From Guillardia theta CCMP2712 (Eukaryota; Protista; Cryptophyta): 64,000 nt of DNA. A program made the position numbers and the translations under genes. Below the pieces are notes generated by a model that searched no databases, was not told the origin of the DNA, and was given only the letters and a program-made list of their open reading frames with translations. The stretch covers positions 434,001-498,000 of the forward strand of contig NW_005434630.1 of assembly GCF_000315625.1 (NCBI RefSeq). The letters are read 5' to 3'. This document shows positions 38,398-43,649 of the stretch, piece after piece; the first letter of the stretch is position 1; each line of letters opens with the position of its first letter.

Positions 38398-41300
38398 TCA
38401 AAGACTCTTTGCGCCCATATCCTCCAGCATTTCCTTAATTGAACATGGAATACTCTGATCGATCGTGGCATCTCGAAACATTAGTTCGTTGCCGAAACAA
38501 TTGAGATCAACTGAGAGAAGAAAGCATCCGTCACTTAAACGCGACCAGCACTTGAAACAATGATCATCACGAGAAAAAGAAAACAAAACATCTGCATGCC
38601 GCCCCCAGCTCACATCACTGACGATTCCTTTATGCCCAAAAAGAGCCTGACACCTCCCCGTCTCTACCTCCCACACCCGTATCTTCTTGTTGTATCCTGT
38701 TGACCAGGCCGCGATCCTCCTCCCGTCCGGACTCCAGCTCACGTCGCTGACTGTATCTCCTTCAGCCTCCAGCACCTGACACCTCCCCGTCTCTTCCCAC
38801 ACCCGTATCTTGCCTCCGTCGCCTGATGACCTTGCAGCGATCCTCCTCCCGTCCGGACTCCAGCTCACGTCGCTGACTGTATCTCCTTCAGCCTCCAGCA
38901 CCTGACACCTCCCCGTCCGAAGCTCTACCTCCCACACCCATATCTTCTTGTTGTATAAATAGGACCTTGCAGCGATCCTCCTCCCGTCCGGGCTCCAGTG
39001 CCAGCTCATGTCGCTGAGTTCATCTCCTTCAGCCTCCAGCACCTGACACCTCCCCGTCTCTACCTCCCACACCCGTATCTTCTGCCCGTCGCCTGATGAC
39101 CTTGCAGCGATCCTCCTCCCGTCCGGACTCCAGCTCACGTTGCTGACTGTATCTCCTTCAGCCTCCAGCACCTGACACCTCCCCGTCTCTACCTCCCACA
39201 CCCATATCTTCTGCCCGTCGCCTGATGACCAGGCCGCGATCCTCCTCCCGTCCGGCGGACTGCAGCAAACACTACTCCAGCCCACGTCGCTGACTGTATC
39301 TCCTTCAGCCTCCAGCACCTGACATCTCCCCGTCTCTTCCCACACCCGTATCTTGCCCCCGTCGCCTGATGACCAGGCCGCGATCCTCCTCCCGTCCGGA
39401 CTCCAGCTCACGTCGCTGACTGTATCTCCTTCAGCCTCCAGCACCTGACACCTCCCCGTCTCTACCTCCCAGCCTGTCCATGCCCGTTTTTTTTTTTGCA
39501 CTGTGAAAGTCACTTCGTACCCACTGTCAGCTATTTCCATTGATTCTTCGACATCAGTTTGAATTTGAGTTACTATCTTCTTACCATCTTGACTCCATTT
39601 CACGTCCGCGATCTCTCCTTCAAATTCCTGCAGCACCCTGCTGCAACTTCCTGTTTCTACTTCCCATATCTGTAACTGAACGGTTTCATAATCTGATGAG
39701 TCTTCATTTTCTGATTCTGATTCACTCCAAAGGTCTGAATCTGAATCAAACATGTCTGAGTCCTCGTCACTGTCTAGCCAAGAGTCAGAATCAGACTCAG
39801 ATTTTGACCAGACAGCAAGCCTCTTCCCGTCTGGACTCCAGCTAGCAACCTTTGCCCCTTCCAAATAGCTGAGAAGCTCCTGATTCCTCCCAGTCACTAC
39901 ATCCCAGATCAATATCCTCCCGTCCGGGTCTGAGTCCGAGTAAGTTGCAAATTTTGTTTTTGATTTCTCCCAAGTCATCTTTTCGAAGAAAACATTTTTG
40001 TAAGAGAATTCAGTGTTACGTGGTTTCTCGTACATCGGTAAAAATTTATGACCCCACGTTTGCTCAAGAAACGAAGCACACCATCATCATTCAGCGAAAT
40101 ACACAGACCTTCCCCTTGTTTTGAGATGCTCATGATATCCGAGGAATGTTGAATCGATCTTAAGCATTCCTCCAGTGCAAGGTCCCAGACTCGCAGCATC
40201 TTCTTGGGATTCGAATGAACCGTAACGAATGTCCTTCCTTCTCGACTCCAAATGATTCGATCAACCTGAAATCCATGTCCCACCACCACTTGACACCTCC
40301 CCGTCTCTACCTCCCACACCCGTATCTTCCTTGAATATGACCAGGCCGCGATCCTCCTCCCGTCCGGACTCCAGCTCACGTCGCTGACTGTATCTCCTTC
40401 AGCCTCCAGCACCTGACACCTCCCCGTCTCTACCTCCCACACCCGTATCTTCGCCCGTCGCCTGATGACCTTGCAGCGATCCTCCTCCCGTCCGGACTCC
40501 AGCTCACGTTGCTGACTGTATCTCCTTCAGCCTCCAGCACCTGACACCTCCCCGTCTCTACCTCCCACACCGTGATTTGATGTTTTTGCTCAGTCCGAGA
40601 CCAGGTCGCGATCTGCTGCTCTCTTGGTGACAATTTTCGATCATAATGAATGGGAATCGATATGTCTGTTCTTTTAGTACACCCTTTTGTCATGAGATCT
40701 ACCGTATGTAGATAGCACTTTACGCAATTTGTTGACCATGTGATGTTTCCGTCAGCTCTGAAATTCATATCTCGGATCGCTCCGTTGTTTCCTTTTACTT
40801 CAAAATAACATTCTTCTGTTTCGATATCCCATACTTTGATTGAGCCCTTGCTCGACACACATGCCAAGCTCTTGCCATCAGCCTTCCATTTCATTTTCTC
40901 AATATCTTCATCAAACCAGGATTCGAGCTGCACATTGCAAATTCCTGATTTTACATCCCACACAAATATGGATCCATTACTTGATTTGGTCGCTAATTGT
41001 TTTCCTTCAAGATCGAATACCCCGTGTTGTACATCCTGACCCATGAGGTTTACAACTGGCATTTCTCCAAAGAAAGCACCATCTAGACGAGCTCCTTCAA
41101 GCATGGATTCCACAAAGTATCCGTGACTTGCGTCTACACCCGACAGATCTGCTCCCTTCAGGTTGGTCCGGTGAAAGATTCCGTTGCTCAAGATTGCGCC
41201 TGCAAGTCTCACTCCATGAAGGTCCAAGCCTGAGAAAGGCACGCTCGCGGCCACCAAGATCGTAGCCGCATTGGCTGAGGCTCTTGCAATTGTCTCAAGC

Positions 41301-43310
41301 TCGCAGTGCCGCGAGGCTCTGATCACGTCAAATAGTCGTTCTATGTACTTGGGTTTGCTTCGCAGCACCATTGCGTGCTCTTTGATTGACTCTATTTCGT
41401 CTCGCAGGTTGTAGACAGTCAGACCCTCTGGCACGATATCGTTTTCCTCGCCCACACCAGCGCGAAGCTCCTCAAAGGTATTCTCGGCAAGGAGAAACTC
41501 CGCACAGTGTCATGCACGAAGCTGACCTCCAGAATATCTCCAAGCTTGTTTGTCTTGAGTCGTGTCAGGCAGCCTCTGAGCAGCCAGTATCCCAACTCCT
41601 TCTCCACGTGGCCTTGCCTCATCGACAGGTTGAAAGGAGGTTCTGATAGGAAGATCCCCCCTGACTTGTGTCGTATGATGATGTTACGTTGCCTGAGCAT
41701 GTGAAGACAGAGCTGTTGAGCAGCTCTTGAGTACCAGCGAATGTAATTTCCATCATCAACCTCGGCCTGCTGCGCCAACTCTGCAAGCTTATGATTTTGC
41801 TTCAATTTGTCCCACTCTCTTCTATACCACTCCTTGGCGTACTCCTTGTACATGCTGTGTCGTGTAATCATGGATTTTGGCTTGTTCATTCGTTTGTAAA
41901 ATAGTCCAGGAAGCACAGTAAGCATCACCTTCAACGAGTAGGGTGTGCTTATAATGCTTTTGAGCTCGGGATTTGATTTTAATGCCTCTTCAAATTGCTC
42001 CATGCTCAATCCCTTGTGAGATCGCTTCATTACTTGGTCTTCGATGTATCGGCTGATTTGATCCTTCGCGTTCCAGCTCAGTGGACAAACCCAAGCGACT
42101 TGAAGGGCTTCCCTTCCCCCAAGCCCATGCGGCCAAAAGAGCGGGTCTGCCTTTCCTTCCATTTTCAGGTAGCCACTCCTACAAGTAACGATAACCTTGA
42201 TGCCTTTGCTGACTGCAAGCTCCTTGAATAGCTTGTCGACAACATTCTCTGTCGTCCCCATCTCATCATAAGCATCCATTACGACGAAAAACGAGTGACG
42301 GCGAAGGAAATCTCTCCACGCCTGATCATTGACTGGCGATTTCTCAGGCCCCACAGCATCCTTCATGTATTCCTTTACACTTTTGCATCTCGGAAGATAT
42401 AGATACACTGGGTAAGCTTTGTCTGCATGCCATGCTTCTCCCATCTCTATTACCCACTTCATGCCGATGGTTGACTTGCCTGATCCGGCCTGTCCGAGAA
42501 GCAGCAGGACACGCTTCCTTTTATCGTGCATGAAACTATGCAGAAGCTTTGAAGATGGCACACCTGGTGCTTGCCTGAACTCAGGATCCGAATCTGTGCA
42601 GTCAGTCTCAATAAAGCAATCGACCGCTTCGTCTACGCTCTCCGAAAAATCACCAAGTGTGTGCTTGATGATTTCACGGAGGTTTTTTGGTATGCTACCG
42701 TATGTCCACTCGACAACCTTACCCGATTCTAGATCCACTTTGTCTGCAAAGCCGTACCTATGACTGTGGCACCAGGCATTGATGATCATATTAGCCTTGT
42801 GAGGCATGAAAGGAGGACTTTGAGATGTGACCATGTGAATAGAGACTTTAGCCTTCTCTTCCAGCTGTTTTATGGTCTGAAAGTCTTCAAAGAAAACTCA
42901 ATTGTATTATCTCCTGCTGTTTCCAGCTCTCCATCAGCAGTTCCGTGCACTCCAGTGTTGATATGAATAGATTGACCAAATGCACTCATTGCTTCAACGA
43001 TCTCCTTGACATCTTCAGCACATACTGGCTGAGTATTCTCCCACAAGTGCTGACCAGAAGCAAGACTGAACACAAAGAATTTGCGATCCGTGGACCATCG
43101 GAGAACATAACGGCCTGGTAATGTCTCAATGAGTCCAAGCGCCCTTGCCTCCTTTTGCAAGTCGAACTTCCGTCCCAGAACCAGGTCATCACTATGAACC
43201 ACAACTCCTCGTTTCTTACCACCTTGACCTAGGTCATGTCGAGATCGCTCTACTTCCTGCTCCAGCTCATCATCTTCCTCCCAGTGCTCACGATCTTGTC
43301 CTGCCCTCAT
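38398..43310 (-). pseudogene. NLR-like STAND protein: putative His/Cys peptidase N-terminus, NACHT, pentapeptide repeats, WD40 repeats; intronless, with four single-base frameshifts
   Basis: Walker A LLLGQAGSGKST, Walker B VVMDAYDEM, VIVTCR, TPYSL, FVHDTVREFLLAE (after frame repair), ASANAATILVAASVPFSGLDLHGVRLAGAILSNGIF...FFGEMP, many WSPDGRRIAA repeats. Five ORFs join by restoring one base at ~42895, ~41500, ~40453 and ~40043. Confidence 0.88.
38645..40575 (-). repeat. Eight near-identical ~126-147-bp WD40-coding repeats (6 + 2)
   Basis: Unit cctgacacctccccgtctctacctcccacacccgtatcttc...tgactgtatctccttcagcctccagca recurs near 38645, 38775, 38900, 39041, 39170, 39317, 40290 and 40410, with partial copies near 39443 and 40540. 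Confidence 0.95.
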
Positions 43311-43649
43311 CGCTCTTCAAACCTGCCCGTTACTAGAGGGGTTACCGGGCGTAGTACCTGGCGTAGTACTACACGAAGGGTCATGTGTTGTATGAGGGTC
43401 TTGGTCGTCCACTCCATAGGGAGAAGCTGGGGAGAAGCTGGGGAGAAGCCTTTGTTCCCTTCACTGCAGGTACGGATGGTCTCCTTCATGCTGACGCTTT
43501 GCGGTTTCTCTGATATCTGGCGGATCACCATGGAGCTACGAGCATCGTTACCGCGTACCAGAGCCGCCCGGCTCAAATAACCAGCGTGTTCTATCGCCGA
43601 CCCCGGCCGATTCTTTTAACGAAAGCCGGGCAGTCCCCGGTCAAAGGCG

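Follow-up and report, generated by a model that had tools for sequence, protein, structure and literature searches.

A probably decayed gene of the cryptophyte alga Guillardia theta and its intact paralogues point to an NLR-like protein family headed by a Tox-HDC-like domain

The minus strand of a 64,000-nucleotide stretch of the Guillardia theta CCMP2712 genome (NCBI RefSeq assembly GCF_000315625.1, contig NW_005434630.1, positions 434,001 to 498,000 of the forward strand; hereafter the window) carries a broken gene (Table 1) that we regard as quite probably the decayed copy of a cryptophyte protein family combining a Tox-HDC-like domain, a NACHT-type nucleoside triphosphatase (NTPase) of the STAND class (signal transduction ATPases with numerous domains), pentapeptide repeats and WD40 repeats, the N-terminal domains of which are predicted to act as a proximity-activated cysteine-dependent enzyme. 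The gene in the window is probably dead, and it is the intact paralogues that carry the argument. The window copy flags a real and previously unreported type of protein resembling the nucleotide-binding domain and leucine-rich repeat receptors (NLRs), which is intact in these paralogues.

A search of the Guillardia theta assembly (87.1 Mb, 669 contigs) revealed a twelve-copy family, comprising the window copy and 11 intact copies, along with two small fragments. From the N- to the C-terminus, the intact members consist of a short variable leader, the Tox-HDC domain of ∼165 residues, a divergent NACHT-type STAND NTPase, pentapeptide repeats and a long WD40 array, and in Guillardia the NTPase always follows the domain at a spacing of ∼90 residues. 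Pfam scans of the window and the paralogues, together with tblastn, showed the same tripartite order of effector, NTPase and repeats throughout the family to which the window gene belongs, and thereby agreed with an earlier note, made from the sequence alone, which had placed the domain directly upstream of the NACHT module. The NTPase of the window copy matched NPHP3_N with 27.9 bits (cut-off 24.8) and NACHT with 23.0 bits, the latter below its cut-off of 26.7; when the corresponding regions of four paralogues were compared with Pfam NACHT, three scored between 23 and 27.1 bits, one of them above the cut-off, and the fourth gave no match. The nearest relatives outside this genome were those of another cryptophyte, Hanusia phi.

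In the window copy, the roughly 165-residue domain is split between two minus-strand frames, the second of which continues uninterrupted from the Cys motif into the P-loop NTPase. DNA alignment with three intact paralogues showed that the window copy is one base short in a short T run at the junction (break 1), a break that is genuine when judged against the intact members of the family. The split motif region which the earlier note had described upstream of the NACHT was thereby confirmed; as for the string EFFFEDFQ that it had quoted after restoring one T, the motifs are present as described, and one residue of the string is not encoded in the sequence as it stands. Each of the 11 intact copies elsewhere in the genome spans the whole region in a single frame (794-2,120 aa), and the split pattern is therefore not a product of chance.

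In order to identify the domain, the two pieces of the window copy were scanned apart and never joined, and the searches otherwise used the naturally intact paralogues. Comparison of nine intact paralogue domains with Pfam (E ≤ 10) yielded Tox-HDC (PF15656) as the sole recurring family, matched by five of the nine, and the best paralogue reached 23.6 bits (cut-off 21; E 6.5e-5) over profile positions 2-114 of 130. Since the Pfam scores were borderline, the identity was subjected to an independent profile test. Three canonical Tox-HDC proteins, recovered independently with PF15656 from 401 gammaproteobacterial genomes (47-62 bits), were scored with a hidden Markov model (HMM) of the family seeded from the Guillardia domains and gave 51.1, 42.5 and 40.9 bits over the full domain, whereas none of 2,000 shuffles exceeded 6.6 bits. 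The HMM alignment paired the canonical SGSHG with NTGTHG, FFIKD with F..ED and FYCYS with AWCYS, and hhalign of two thin alignments, one of the family and one of the canonical members, resulted in an E-value of 4.2e-4. A profile built from the alignment of the 11 Guillardia domains (A2) and searched against 1.84 billion representative proteins retrieved 168 clusters at E ≤ 1e-3, 79 of them at E ≤ 1e-10, and a Tox-HDC match (E ≤ 1e-3, best 1.9e-8) was present in 10 of the 84 relatives scanned.

Tox-HDC was defined in 2012 by the motif [SGxH], a D/N and an invariant C (Zhang et al., 2012; PMC3482391). Across 141 domains of the family the His is kept in 134 (95%), the Asp in 121 (86%) and the Cys in 132 (94%; four of the remainder are gaps), and 127-135 of the domains retain the neighbouring N, G, G, G and S. 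These comparisons support the assignment of the domain to the Tox-HDC superfamily, as a divergent clade, which is the identity that the earlier note had suggested; the conservation of His and Cys among homologues, on which it had made this identity depend, is likewise evident from these counts. A sub-clade with the motif HINGGTHG was considered as a bridge to Pfam and rejected, as no scanned member matched Tox-HDC and P0133 proved to be a false positive (an F5/8 type C protein). The ESM Atlas offered no usable lead on the domain, and a scan of NCBIfam gave chance-level matches only.

AlphaFold2 modelling on A2 gave an alpha/beta domain with a mean predicted local distance difference test score (pLDDT) of 90.6 and a predicted template modelling score of 0.88. 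Its core is formed by a strand, a helix, strand 78-82, a loop with His85, helix 97-111, strand 119-123 and strand 138-141 followed by Cys144, so that in the model the His comes directly after strand 78-82 and the Cys directly after strand 138-141. For Tox-HDC, the 2012 study had predicted a Rossmannoid sandwich 'similar to' caspases and flavodoxin, with H, D and C each placed at the end of one of three consecutive strands (PMC3482391). The fold matches of the domain model were to generic Rossmann-like proteins (PTA, PlsX, SRP GTPases), all at background Z, and a Foldseek search of PDB and BFVD retrieved nothing at E ≤ 1e-3. The honest description of the modelled domain is a Rossmann-like alpha/beta fold with no close solved relative.

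Several of the results weigh against the Tox-HDC assignment. Most paralogues fall under the Pfam cut-off, as of the nine domains scanned four were weak (11.7-18.2 bits), three gave no match and one matched Pfg27 only, and the two domain pieces of the window copy, scanned apart, had no useful Pfam match at all. A six-frame scan of the Guillardia genome with PF15656 gave no match, the divergence of the clade being too great for this approach. PDB sequence searches with the Guillardia profile and with a broad family profile found no match, and no member of Tox-HDC has a solved structure. Finally, Asp106 lies within helix 97-111 of the model, with the extra strand 119-123 in between, as opposed to the position at a strand end that had been predicted for the D.

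The activity of Tox-HDC was given in 2012 only as a prediction, either thiol peptidase or transglutaminase (PMC3482391), and as no Tox-HDC structure has been solved, the chemistry of the Guillardia domain is also a prediction. An enzyme with a cysteine nucleophile is favoured because the conserved positions are of the catalytic type (His, Asp, Cys, a Gly-rich loop and Ser) and not those of a hydrophobic interface. By analogy with NLR/STAND proteins, the WD40 array would bind a ligand, nucleotide-dependent oligomerisation of the NTPase would cluster the N-terminal domains, and the clustered Tox-HDC-like domains may then become active as a cysteine-dependent enzyme. This enzyme could be a thiol peptidase, or else a transglutaminase-like or acyl-transfer enzyme; its substrates would be proteins of the host or of an invader, and the outcome could be defence or cell death.

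It is possible, though we would advance it with reserve, that the cysteine-dependent enzyme is not a peptidase, and is instead a transglutaminase, deamidase or acyltransferase, or a hydrolase whose NTGxHGxxxG loop holds a phosphate or nucleotide. The authors who defined the family left a transglutaminase possible (PMC3482391), the Gly-rich loop that follows the first core strand is strongly conserved and would be suited to small-molecule binding, as would the Rossmann-like matches, and the U-box and zf-Nse fusions among the relatives described below fit protein modification. However, these fold matches are at background level, and the Pfam, PDB and NCBIfam searches showed no sequence link to such enzyme families.

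With regard to the state of the window gene, tblastn with four full-length intact paralogues detected three further frame changes downstream of break 1, of which the earlier note makes no mention, and on this account the gene is probably dead. An intron at the junction was ruled out, as the overlap of the two frames (∼30 bases) is too short and the paralogues read through, and breaks 2-4 are not introns because the query coordinates are contiguous or overlapping at each of them. As break 1 leaves the His motif in one frame and the Asp and Cys motifs in the other, no complete domain is likely to be made from the window copy, which we take to be, probably, a recently inactivated pseudogene. What weighs against a pseudogene is that all four defects are frameshifts, with no in-frame stops inside the pieces, that all 30 family-invariant residues of the domain are present in the two pieces, and that break 1 is situated in a T run; frameshifts without an in-frame stop and with every invariant residue kept are a pattern that would also fit assembly errors. 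That the gene is a working one, its four frame changes being assembly or sequencing errors or being passed at the break by ribosomal frameshifting, nevertheless appears unlikely, as the assembly copes well with the family, leaving 11 paralogues of the same kind uninterrupted. Programmed frameshifting was rejected, since four independent events of this type in a single gene would lack precedent and the site of break 1 is, by inspection, not a canonical slippery heptamer. The public gene model likewise begins after the break.

This public model (P0050, 471 aa; NCBI, UniRef and EukProt) covers window positions 41419-42834 on the minus strand and begins at the first Met past break 1. Neither the His motif nor the Asp motif of the domain is therefore included in it.

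The earlier note had further compared the domain with the caspase-like His-Gly/Ala-Cys dyad, and a caspase-haemoglobinase-fold (clan CD) protease with such a dyad was therefore considered. The local motifs resemble the caspase dyad, with a strand followed by xHG and a strand followed by xWC, the model is alpha/beta, and the likeness to caspases was part of the 2012 prediction cited above. A clan CD fold is nonetheless highly improbable for this domain: caspase, gingipain, legumain, separase and CHAT chains were absent from the Foldseek/VIA-align matches of the domain model, whereas a CHAT domain of the same genome, modelled alike as a positive control, readily matched caspase-fold proteins; at the resolution of these tools, the caspase comparison is thus without support. 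The profile comparison with caspase and CHAT families that the earlier note had suggested was negative as well, no match to Peptidase_C14, CHAT or related families being found at E ≤ 10 for the window pieces or the paralogue domains. Even less credible is a non-catalytic adaptor or oligomerisation module of the CARD/PYD type that would only recruit partners, since, despite the loss of the His in 7 and of the Cys in 9 of the 141 family members (gaps counted), the best-conserved positions over ∼140 very divergent sequences are the catalytic-type small or polar residues N, G, H, G, G, D, S, C and S, and a scaffold would be expected to conserve a hydrophobic surface.

One of the paralogues, a 1,695-aa frame on contig C118 (L050:1108-3117:-; also L051-L062), possesses an extension of ∼650 aa ahead of the Tox-HDC-like domain containing the motifs HLACHG ... 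LNLCWSG. The extension had a weak Pfam match to CHAT (E 0.031), and its AlphaFold2 model (pLDDT 82) matched SAVED-CHAT with an E-value of 6.8e-10 and also Craspase, CED-3, separase and legumain. The Guillardia genome holds at least 21 copies of this CHAT-like module, many clustered on contig C118, and the Cys is absent in 2 of the 12 copies aligned. A table of the 2012 study lists a 'Caspase' protease together with Tox-HDC (PMC3482391), which the pairing of CHAT and Tox-HDC on C118 echoes.

Relatives of the domain are numerous among metagenomic proteins, and the named bacterial sources comprise Simkaniaceae and other Chlamydiota, Bdellovibrionota, a gammaproteobacterial metagenome-assembled genome (MAG) and an Anaerolineae MAG. 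In several metagenomic relatives the domain is followed by a STAND-type arrangement, namely NB-ARC and TPR (P0030), NACHT and HEAT (P0039) or NACHT and ankyrin (P0041), and in P0012 the homology to Guillardia reaches through the NTPase. The chlamydial proteins (1,077-1,226 aa) have the domain first and then a weak P-loop match (AAA_22); one Chlamydiae MAG (contig C12) encodes two such domain-first proteins of 1,095 and 1,179 aa (L047:782-4069:+ and L047:5349-8888:+), each with the weak P-loop behind, separated by a 370-aa open reading frame (ORF). Among 301 sampled Chlamydiota genomes, 6 contain the domain. Other relatives are short, or are fused to ankyrin repeats, U-box, zf-Nse (E3-ligase-like) or a metalloprotease. 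Among the fusions seen in P0064 and other relatives, the metalloprotease is of the matrixin/astacin type together with an RZ zinc finger, and once the domain is fused to a PAD_porph deiminase. Three metagenomic proteins (P0019, P0083 and P0116) carry two tandem copies of the domain, and in P0019 the second of these has Arg in place of the His and Asp in place of the Cys.

A quick tree grouped the 16 cryptophyte domains into one clade (Shimodaira-Hasegawa-like approximate likelihood ratio test 99) within an unresolved metagenomic mass, throughout which the STAND-fused members were scattered, indicating repeated domain shuffling. A scan of viral contigs found no relative of the domain, and tblastn of a paralogue domain against phages, and of the relative P0006 against phages and plasmids, gave chance matches or none. 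When eight long relatives were analysed with PADLOC, only their TPR and ankyrin parts were matched, never the Tox-HDC domain or the NTPase; as the NTPase part is unmatched by the PADLOC models, none of these eight belongs to a known defence family. We put forward, tentatively, that Tox-HDC-like domains may be a widespread and hitherto unrecognised class of executioner enzymes of NLR/STAND immune switches, common to intracellular bacteria (Chlamydiota and others) and cryptophytes, probably by gene transfer, and that in cryptophytes they could act as proximity-activated cysteine enzymes, in one paralogue jointly with the upstream CHAT protease.

The Guillardia domain and Tox-HDC (PF15656) have in common the three motifs in the same order ([S/T]GxH, D and an invariant C), an alpha/beta architecture, and a reciprocal profile link, one paralogue lying over the Pfam cut-off. 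Canonical Tox-HDC domains form the C-terminal tips of RHS-type toxins that are secreted, or else occur as small stand-alone proteins, in beta- and gamma-proteobacteria and phages, whereas the Guillardia domain stands at the N-terminus of a eukaryotic STAND protein that is intracellular, a difference of setting and not of fold. The Guillardia clade differs from the canonical members also in an extra conserved N-terminal part of ∼45 residues and in a longer signature, HxNTGxHGxxxG ... AWCxS, and lies mostly below the Pfam cut-off. Fungal HET-E/NWD-type proteins and animal NLRs display the same tripartite order with a NACHT-type NTPase, near-identical WD40 repeats and a multi-copy family; however, the N-terminal module of the Guillardia proteins is Tox-HDC-like and not HET, HeLo, PNP_UDP, patatin, CARD, PYD or TIR, and a pentapeptide stretch stands between their NTPase and WD40 array. 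Their design, in which an enzymatic effector is joined to a STAND NTPase and a repeat sensor, is also that of bacterial STAND/NLR-like defence proteins (Avs, bNACHT), although the NTPase part of the eight long relatives falls outside the PADLOC defence models. Proteins of the CHAT/caspase fold (SAVED-CHAT, Craspase Csx29) likewise bear a His and a Cys each behind a beta-strand, and a true CHAT-fold domain precedes the Tox-HDC-like domain in the C118 paralogue; in contrast to these, the model of the Tox-HDC-like domain has no detectable clan CD fold match.

A literature search with 'Tox-HDC' and 'PF15656' found the family named only in the 2012 survey (PMC3482391), HDC is unmentioned in two large eLife surveys of prokaryotic NTPase-centred conflict systems, and nothing relevant was found for NACHT in Guillardia or cryptophytes. 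Within the literature searched, neither the occurrence of Tox-HDC in algae nor its link to STAND NTPases thus appears to have been described, in agreement with the earlier note, whose author had not seen such a module described for algae. Since it was predicted in 2012, Tox-HDC has remained an orphan, for which neither a structure nor an assay exists and no role is known beyond secreted bacterial toxins. Its N-terminal place in an expanded cryptophyte NLR-like family, together with the repeated STAND fusions, provides a testable cellular context for it as the putative effector of a nucleotide-driven switch. It would add a new effector type to the domains common to bacterial toxins and eukaryotic immune receptors, and would extend NLR-like biology to a major algal lineage in which we found none described. 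The intact paralogues, the conserved triad and the confident model make direct experiments possible.

Table 1. Parts of the broken gene, listed in reading direction (positions are those of the window).
Feature	Position	Strand	Basis
Broken gene, whole	∼43,310 down to 38,398	-	ORFs and paralogue alignment
Piece 1, ORF of 146 aa: short acidic leader and first two-thirds of the Tox-HDC-like domain	42870-43310	-	ORF translations; 50-58% identity to intact paralogues
SDDLVLG; domain start ∼43193	43173-43193	-	translation of piece 1
His motif HINTGVHG	42942-42965	-	translation of piece 1
NTIEF, then SLKTFRP and stop (42870-42872), end of first frame	NTIEF 42894-42908	-	translation
Frame break 1: overlap of two open frames, one-base gap in T run	42877-42908	-	ORFs and DNA alignment, three intact paralogues
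Second part of the Tox-HDC-like domain, other frame; opens with VFFEDFQ at 42897, domain end ∼42712	42712-42897	-	family profile positions 102-163, E 2.3e-28
ED	42883-42888	-	second-frame translation
VSIHMV	42829-42846	-	second-frame translation
Cys motif NAWCHS	42763-42780	-	second-frame translation
Linker and NACHT-type STAND NTPase	41482-42711	-	Pfam NPHP3_N, NACHT
Walker A GQAGSGKST	42469-42495	-	translation
Walker B-like FFVVMDAYDE	42262-42291	-	translation
Frame break 2	41482-41497	-	tblastn, four intact paralogues; overlapping coordinates in query and window
Pentapeptide repeats and first WD40 blades	40430-41497	-	Pfam Pentapeptide 3.8e-8 and WD40 families
Frame break 3	∼40440-40470	-	tblastn frame change and ORF list
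WD40 repeat array (sensor part)	38398-40442	-	Pfam WD40 1.3e-29
Frame break 4	∼39981-40047	-	tblastn frame change

Some minor features were observed in the surroundings of the family members. A short direct repeat of GGGGAGAAGCT-like units is located at window positions 43415-43455 (plus strand), ∼100-150 bases before the broken gene's first ATG. The closest paralogue (L002, contig C52) carries, upstream of its full domain, an incomplete second copy of the domain's opening ∼30 residues (SADGLRAGPKHDLQTQARELGL) and, behind it, a poly-Glu run, and in L009 a long Arg-Glu dipeptide run and an N-gap occupy the same position. On the strand opposite the paralogue L008 (contig C13), a 422-aa frame resembles, by eye only, a protein kinase catalytic domain.

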